A DNA stretch of 63,486 nucleotides, filler included, from Polymyxa betae A26-41 (lineage: Eukaryota > Protista > Endomyxa: Phytomyxea), in NCBI GenBank assembly GCA_003693705.1. It is 6 parts of 6 records of this genome, joined end to end, with 100 filler letters (N's around TTAATTAATTAA, not from the genome) between each part and the next. Parts side by side here need not be neighbours in the genome. Positions count along the whole stretch, not along the records: positions 32,713 to 50,932 come from RBZT01000792.1; 5 more parts are not named here. One strand, 5' to 3'. Position 1 is the stretch's first letter, and every line of letters begins with the position of its first letter. Both the position numbers and the translations under genes were made by a program. This document shows, in pieces, positions 50,755-50,932 of this stretch. The notes beneath the pieces were generated by a model. The model worked only from the letters and a program-made list of their open reading frames with translations. It was not told where the DNA came from and made no database searches.

Positions 50755-50932
50755 TGTTAGCATATGAGCGCTGTTAGATCAATCTCGAGATATCAATAGC
50801 GTTGACTCAAGCTAATTCAACCGGAAGCATTGTCTTCCGGTTGCATGCTATCAAATAAAACACTTCTTCAAACACATTCCAGTTCAAAACCCTCTCCCGT
50901 CTAACAGATTAAGAGTCCCACTTGCCTCTATA
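50755..50932 (+). mobile_element. 152-bp 5' LTR (50755-50906) plus primer-binding site GATTAAGAGTCCCA (50907-50920)
   Basis: Near-identical to 91-242; the internal flank is shared with the copy at 58275. Confidence 0.88.

Follow-up and report, generated by a model that had tools for sequence, protein, structure and literature searches.

Half-tRNA priming has been demonstrated experimentally for the retrotransposons copia and Ty5, both with initiator tRNA-Met. It is the defining trait of the genus Hemivirus (PMC8515867), hemivirus cDNA starts at the 3′-OH of tRNA nt 40 (PMC1181622), and primers consisting of a 3′-truncated tRNA are known from no lineages other than those of copia (PMC6317226, PMC10886601). 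Other tRNAs have been reported in this role. A half of tRNA-Arg UCU is used by the gamma/whio families of Candida albicans (PMC4139406) and a half tRNA-Ile by the plant Bianca lineage (PMC6317226). In Puccinia hordei, the primer-binding sites (PBSs) of the Copia-50, -18 and -6 elements and of Helenus TRIMs correspond to anticodon-loop sequence of three tRNAs (Tyr, Ile and Asp), and the PBS is common to autonomous copia elements and their miniature non-autonomous partners (PMC10886601). An internal tRNA-Lys PBS is found in FunCo1, a fungal Ty1/copia clade (Donnart et al. 2017, PMC5445492). Insertion a short distance upstream of tRNA genes, from a few to ~30 bp, is listed in a review table for Ty3, Tj1, Tyl3/Ylt1/Tyl6, Tca8 and DGLT-A; all precise tRNA-start targeters in that table belong to Ty3/gypsy, and the copia elements Ty1, Ty2 and Ty4 use a ~1-kb window (PMC5911963).

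The locus described here lies at the end of an 18-kb piece (positions 32,713 to 50,932, from RBZT01000792.1) of a 63,486-nt stretch of DNA, filler included, from the Polymyxa betae A26-41 assembly GCA_003693705.1; this whole stretch is referred to below as the window. The coordinates of the features are collected in Table 1. The LTR has the TG...CA termini of a Ty1/copia-type LTR, with a 3′ end reading ...CCGTCTAACA. Contigs of four public runs (two DNA and two transcript-like) part from the window sequence exactly before 50755 and after 50906, which identifies the repeat as a 152-bp LTR. Words from this LTR reached ~130–290 times the depth of single-copy DNA in run X1. The junction between LTR and PBS was also found to be multi-copy, with a 387-nt contig from run X2 that starts at 50878 and has a depth of 219.8, compared with 13.9 for single-copy sequence. 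Because this junction is itself repeated, the sequence following the LTR is element interior and not unique flank, and the LTR is a 5′ LTR. An LTR ending at 50906 with the site directly after it had been proposed in the initial annotation from the sequence; the contig loose ends set the same limit independently. The same annotation noted that pol is absent here; the 18-kb piece stops 12 nt past the PBS, and tblastn with nine Pol proteins as queries against it gave no match to any retroelement coding remnant. Copies of the LTR vary at a cluster of sites near the hairpin (50821–50840 / 50840–50852), including a G>C change at 50840.

Table 1. Positions of the features of the locus and of the Asn-type sites in related elements
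Feature	Position	Strand	Details
Inverted-repeat pair	35200-35274 / 36759-36833		75 nt, 88% complementarity, brackets 1.5 kb
Inverted-repeat pair	38691-38752 / 39552-39613		62 nt, 94% complementarity, brackets 0.8 kb
CFAP58-like coiled-coil gene	45740-49760	+	exon 48839-49150 matches CFAP58 chains in PDB, E = 9e-8, with single-exon queries
TTTTT run after tRNA-Glu	50663-50667	-	
tRNA-Glu(CTC) gene	50671-50743	-	ARAGORN; Rfam tRNA 48.7 bits; transcribed away from element
Spacer, tRNA-Glu 5′ end to LTR start	50744-50754		11 nt
Candidate target-site duplication CGTTC	50750-50754		5 nt of spacer nearest LTR
5′ LTR	50755-50906	+	152 bp; termini TGTTAG...CTAACA; limits from contig loose ends, 4 runs
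LTR hairpin CCGGAAG-CATTGT-CTTCCGG	50821-50840		7-bp stem
AATAAA within LTR	50854-50859		
Predicted minus-strand PBS GATTAAGAGTCCCA	50907-50920	+	14 nt; complement corresponds to tRNA-Lys(CUU) nt 27-40
Leader start CTTGCCTCTATA	50921-50932	+	first 12 nt past PBS, up to piece end; not conserved in relatives
Asn-type PBS GATTAACAGTCGAAA	L007:207-221; L010:287-301, 4861-4875		after LTR

The predicted PBS begins at the first base past the terminal CA of the LTR and is present once in the 18-kb piece, in which 0.08 chance matches with up to two mismatches would be expected. Its complement, UGGGACUCUUAAUC, is contained in the human tRNA-Lys(CTT) sequence printed in PMC5493846, and the LysCTT primer printed in PMC6932762 starts with it. 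Counted along the printed human sequence, UGGGACUCUUAAUC is nt 27–40. It starts with the 5′ strand of the anticodon stem (5 nt), takes in the loop CUCUUAA (7 nt) and ends two bases into the 3′ strand. Other tRNA registers were rejected, as a legal anticodon loop, with U33 before CUU and a purine (A) at position 37, is obtained in this register only. The arm match was made with the human sequence, and ARAGORN found no tRNA-Lys gene in the 18-kb piece. A conventional TGG-type PBS was likewise rejected, none being present at the site after the LTR.

Relatives of the element were sought by scanning metagenomes with a word composed of the last six LTR bases and the 14-mer, which returned a single contig, L001. 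In this contig an unrelated LTR ending in ...TCTAACA is followed by the same 14-mer and, 10 nt further, by a gag-pol ORF. A word search with the L001 polyprotein yielded 346 relatives, and the DNA of a subset was examined. Two scans of viral contigs gave no match to the LTR-end and PBS word and no Pol relatives. Six Lys-type elements (L001–L006, from metagenome, ENA and Logan contigs with 46–60% GC) were obtained, and in all six GATTAAGAGTCCCA is identical and directly follows the 5′ LTR. Pol identity to L001 is 62% for L002, 57% for L003, 41% for L004, 41% for L005 and 43% for L006. The LTRs and leaders of these elements are unrelated; outside the 14-mer, no more than seven LTR-terminal bases and three leader bases are common to the elements. 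The 15th position, immediately past the PBS, varies across the seven elements (C, C, T, T, A, C, C), which means that the conserved block stops exactly opposite tRNA nt 27. The range of 50907–50921 given for the site in the initial annotation is accordingly shortened to the 14-mer at 50907–50920, the final C lying outside the conserved block. Its assignment to the anticodon arm of tRNA-Lys(CUU), as the complement of nt 27–40, holds: the human sequence is identical, and the same 14-mer recurs in six relatives.

Pfam domains in the relatives follow the order gag, Pol_BBD, gag_pre-integrs, rve, SH3 and RVT_2. With the integrase located before RVT_2, all six Lys-type relatives are Ty1/copia elements. 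From the type of PBS, together with the relatives found through that same PBS, we infer that the window copy also belongs to copia. No tRNA gene was found in any of the relative loci examined. Several relatives are arranged in repeated units: L001, L002 and L006 have terminal overlaps of 123–127 nt, so that each contig represents one interior and one LTR in units of 4.4–4.6 kb, and L005 (period 4494) and L010 are tandem element-LTR-element arrays. The elements with such overlaps or arrays are compact copia elements, with LTRs of ~140–240 bp where measured. In L004, the copia element is directly followed by an array (4690–8200) in which a 77-nt satellite is repeated at least 45 times, and in L001 a single in-frame TAG (4150–4152, minus strand) interrupts gag in an otherwise open polyprotein of 1350 amino acids.

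The LTRs of these seven elements were also compared with the PBS for Tf1-like self-priming, in which the transcript primes itself by folding its 5′ end back onto the PBS. Tf1 primes in this way, and plant TAR elements are predicted to do so, but the longest LTR word complementary to the PBS was 4–6 nt, a length that was reached in 188 to 500 of 500 shuffles per LTR. The PBS is, moreover, invariant while the LTRs are otherwise unrelated. Self-priming was rejected, since the complementarity is no longer than in shuffled LTRs in any of the seven elements, and we give it next to no credence. Such complementarity and a conventional TGG PBS had been named at the outset among the findings that would speak against a tRNA half; the former is absent beyond chance in the seven elements, and the latter was found neither in the window copy nor in the relatives.

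Variation of the primer was then followed across a wider copia series. Two elements of the same clade as the Lys type, L007 (Pol 37% identical to L001) and L010, have GATTAACAGTCGAAA after the LTR. Four positions distinguish this sequence from the Lys site, and its complement is an arm with the loop CUGUUAA, the Asn(GUU) anticodon loop; from the anticodon and by comparison with eukaryotic tRNA-Asn, we take the tRNA to be tRNA-Asn(GUU). The occurrence of Asn and Lys sites within one clade represents primer switching. In L008, in L009 (Globisporangium splendens) and at ten copia loci from mis-binned MAG contigs, the site reads GGTTATGAGCC... or GGTTATGGGCCCAG, both of which correspond to the initiator-Met arm, the classical half as in copia and Ty5 (n = 12 elements). 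In every element of the series (21/21), the block begins at the LTR end with two bases (nt 40–39), followed by seven loop bases. The Lys sites and the GGTTATGGGCCCAG sites extend to nt 27, and most sites span nt 27–40. A maximum-likelihood Pol tree of 39 polyproteins placed the Lys and Asn types in one clade (15 sequences, SH-aLRT 100%), apart from the elements with iMet halves and from copia sequences of oomycete, plant, ant and Trametes origin; no named fungal protein in this 39-polyprotein tree fell within the Lys/Asn clade.

Copia polyproteins were also found to be encoded by 37 contigs filed as bacterial or archaeal genomes (L012, L013, L031 and others), one of which is 2.77 Mb long and labelled Nitrospirales. 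An initiator-Met half PBS is present in 10 of the 37. These contigs are eukaryotic DNA mis-binned into MAGs.

A different origin of the conserved block was considered, in which the 14-mer is kept for another purpose, such as packaging, dimerisation or a translation signal, resembles tRNA-Lys(CUU) by chance only, and priming takes place at another site or in another way. Some room for this is left in that primer use and the arm of the source-genome tRNA-Lys are both predictions from sequence, and in that the leader within the window comprises 12 nt only. The block is, however, located exactly where a PBS must be, and no alternative TGG-type PBS is present downstream in the relatives. A role unconnected with tRNA would also not predict the swap to Asn(GUU) and initiator-Met arms in the same 2+7+5 register. 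We regard such a role as very improbable. A tRNA-Lys half as primer is supported by the invariance of the 14-mer within the clade and by the Asn and iMet arms in the shared register, and positions 50907–50920 are, on this sequence evidence, likely to be the PBS of a Ty1/copia hemivirus-like element primed by a tRNA-Lys(CUU) half.

In the mechanism that we propose, the element RNA would pair over 14 nt with nt 27–40 of cytoplasmic tRNA-Lys(CUU), in a duplex running from the 5′ side of the anticodon stem through the entire loop to the second base of the 3′ side. A tRNA-Lys 5′ fragment cut after nt 40 would supply the 3′-OH, and reverse transcriptase would copy U5-R of the 152-bp LTR as strong-stop DNA. 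For the source genome, we infer a tRNA-Lys with the matching arm that is cut at nt 40 and serves as primer. Even if the PBS is real, the primer might be the tRNA precursor before modification, a fragment with a different cut, or some other small RNA containing the same 14 nt. The t6A at position 37 of tRNA-Lys should hinder pairing with the mature tRNA, which favours a primer of this kind, although the same applies to the proven initiator-Met cases; in addition, no enzyme is known to make the cut at nt 40, even for copia and Ty5. Against this, the block spans exactly nt 40 to nt 27 and adjoins position 26, which is commonly m2,2G in tRNA, limits that suit the architecture of a real tRNA. The start of the block also coincides with the published hemivirus start at nt 40 (PMC1181622). 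A primer other than the half of mature tRNA-Lys(CUU) is thus considered unlikely, and the tRNA-Lys half is retained as the preferred primer.

The surroundings of the LTR were analysed next. Upstream of the tRNA-Glu(CTC) gene, 11 nt separate the mature 5′ end from the window LTR, which begins approximately at the expected Pol III start, with the element pointing away from the gene. Other LTR copies in the reads have a tRNA-like 5′ end (GCTCGTGTGG..., reverse complement) at the same 11 nt and in the same orientation; the flanks that give this distance are contig loose ends and may include duplicated loci. Tandem junctions of the form LTR-CCATT-LTR (5 nt) and LTR-TCATTTGC-LTR (8 nt) were seen at single-copy depth in two DNA runs, and the CCATT spacer is consistent with a 5-bp target-site duplication. 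The 11-nt flanks and the tandem LTR junctions suggest that insertions have occurred repeatedly and at a specific position upstream of tRNA genes. The suspicion, raised in the initial annotation, that the element targets tRNA genes gains some support from the window copy, 11 nt from tRNA-Glu(CTC), and from the other flanks in the reads. A Helenus-like arrangement, with the tRNA-Glu gene forming part of the LTR, was rejected: the gene has ~12 times the single-copy depth, the LTR ~130–290 times, and 50755 is where contigs break off.

The same 18-kb piece carries features of the host genome. The CFAP58-like gene contains three introns of 46–53 nt with GT..AG ends, whose removal by splicing is seen in runs X3 and X7, and its presence indicates that the host builds cilia or flagella. 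The two inverted-repeat pairs (35200–36833 and 38691–39613) may be the terminal inverted repeats of DNA transposons.

A small size of the element is hinted at by a 523-nt contig of run X7, which follows the window sequence from 50877 to 50932 and then leads back into the LTR start at 50755. With the LTR end and PBS connected in this way to an LTR start, the interior would be at most 442 nt and the element ~750 bp, as read from one short-read contig of a run showing spliced transcripts. Its depth is ~20x that of the neighbouring gene. The window element may therefore resemble a TRIM (terminal-repeat retrotransposon in miniature), a type of element that is shorter than 1 kb, has two LTRs, a PBS and a PPT, and lacks coding capacity; its interior would be ~440 nt. 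A more comprehensive reading, which we put forward tentatively and hold to be somewhat less probable than its negation, is that the family is a ~750-bp, highly transcribed, non-autonomous derivative of a copia clade in a flagellated host, primed by tRNA-Lys(CUU) or tRNA-Asn(GUU) halves and inserted ~11 nt upstream of tRNA genes. The Ty3-like precision and fixed orientation of insertion form part of this joint claim.

Compared with the initiator-type elements, the window element has a PBS of the same placement and a different predicted primer. In copia, Ty5, 1731 and Osser, the PBS lies next to the 5′ LTR and would pair with an anticodon arm, the primer ends at nt 39/40, and the gene order is of the copia type, as it is in the relatives that share the window PBS. 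These four elements use initiator tRNA-Met, whereas the window site corresponds to the arm of the elongator tRNA-Lys(CUU). Priming is an experimental result for copia and Ty5 and a prediction for the window element. The elements of Candida, the Bianca lineage and Puccinia resemble the window element in having an internal or anticodon-loop PBS derived from an elongator tRNA, but they differ from it in tRNA species and in host, and no report places any of them at a constant distance upstream of tRNA genes.

FunCo1 has a site for the same tRNA. Its PBS and the window site have a 10-nt core, ATTAAGAGTC, in common, and FunCo1 belongs to the copia superfamily, as the window element probably does. 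Past this core, the window site continues ...CCCA and that of FunCo1 ...T; the stem part, GTCCCA in the former and GTCT... in the latter, fits a GGGA-type stem for the window site and a GAGA-type stem for FunCo1. FunCo1 is reported as almost restricted to Pezizomycotina (PMC5445492), whereas the host of the window element has a CFAP58-like gene, which would be unexpected there. The initial annotation had given the combination of features as one not known to it from described elements. An internal tRNA-Lys PBS is in print for FunCo1, and non-initiator halves are in print for Candida, plants and Puccinia; half-tRNA priming of the window element, tRNA-Lys included, is not new in kind. What the comparison adds is that copia-type elements can swap the anticodon arm while the 14-nt register (nt 27–40) stays. 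The Lys sites, the two Asn sites and the iMet outgroups together form a clean natural series for a change of primer choice, and the same series bears on what cuts the tRNA at nt 40.

With the Ty3-type targeters, finally, the window element shares the short distance upstream of a tRNA gene; those targeters are Ty3/gypsy elements, whereas the window element has a copia-type PBS. If the 11-nt distance is general, precise Pol III-directed integration would extend from gypsy-type to copia-type elements. Should the tentative joint reading of the family also prove true, Pol III targeting with start-site precision would have its first copia-type example and would have evolved convergently with that of the Ty3/gypsy elements.
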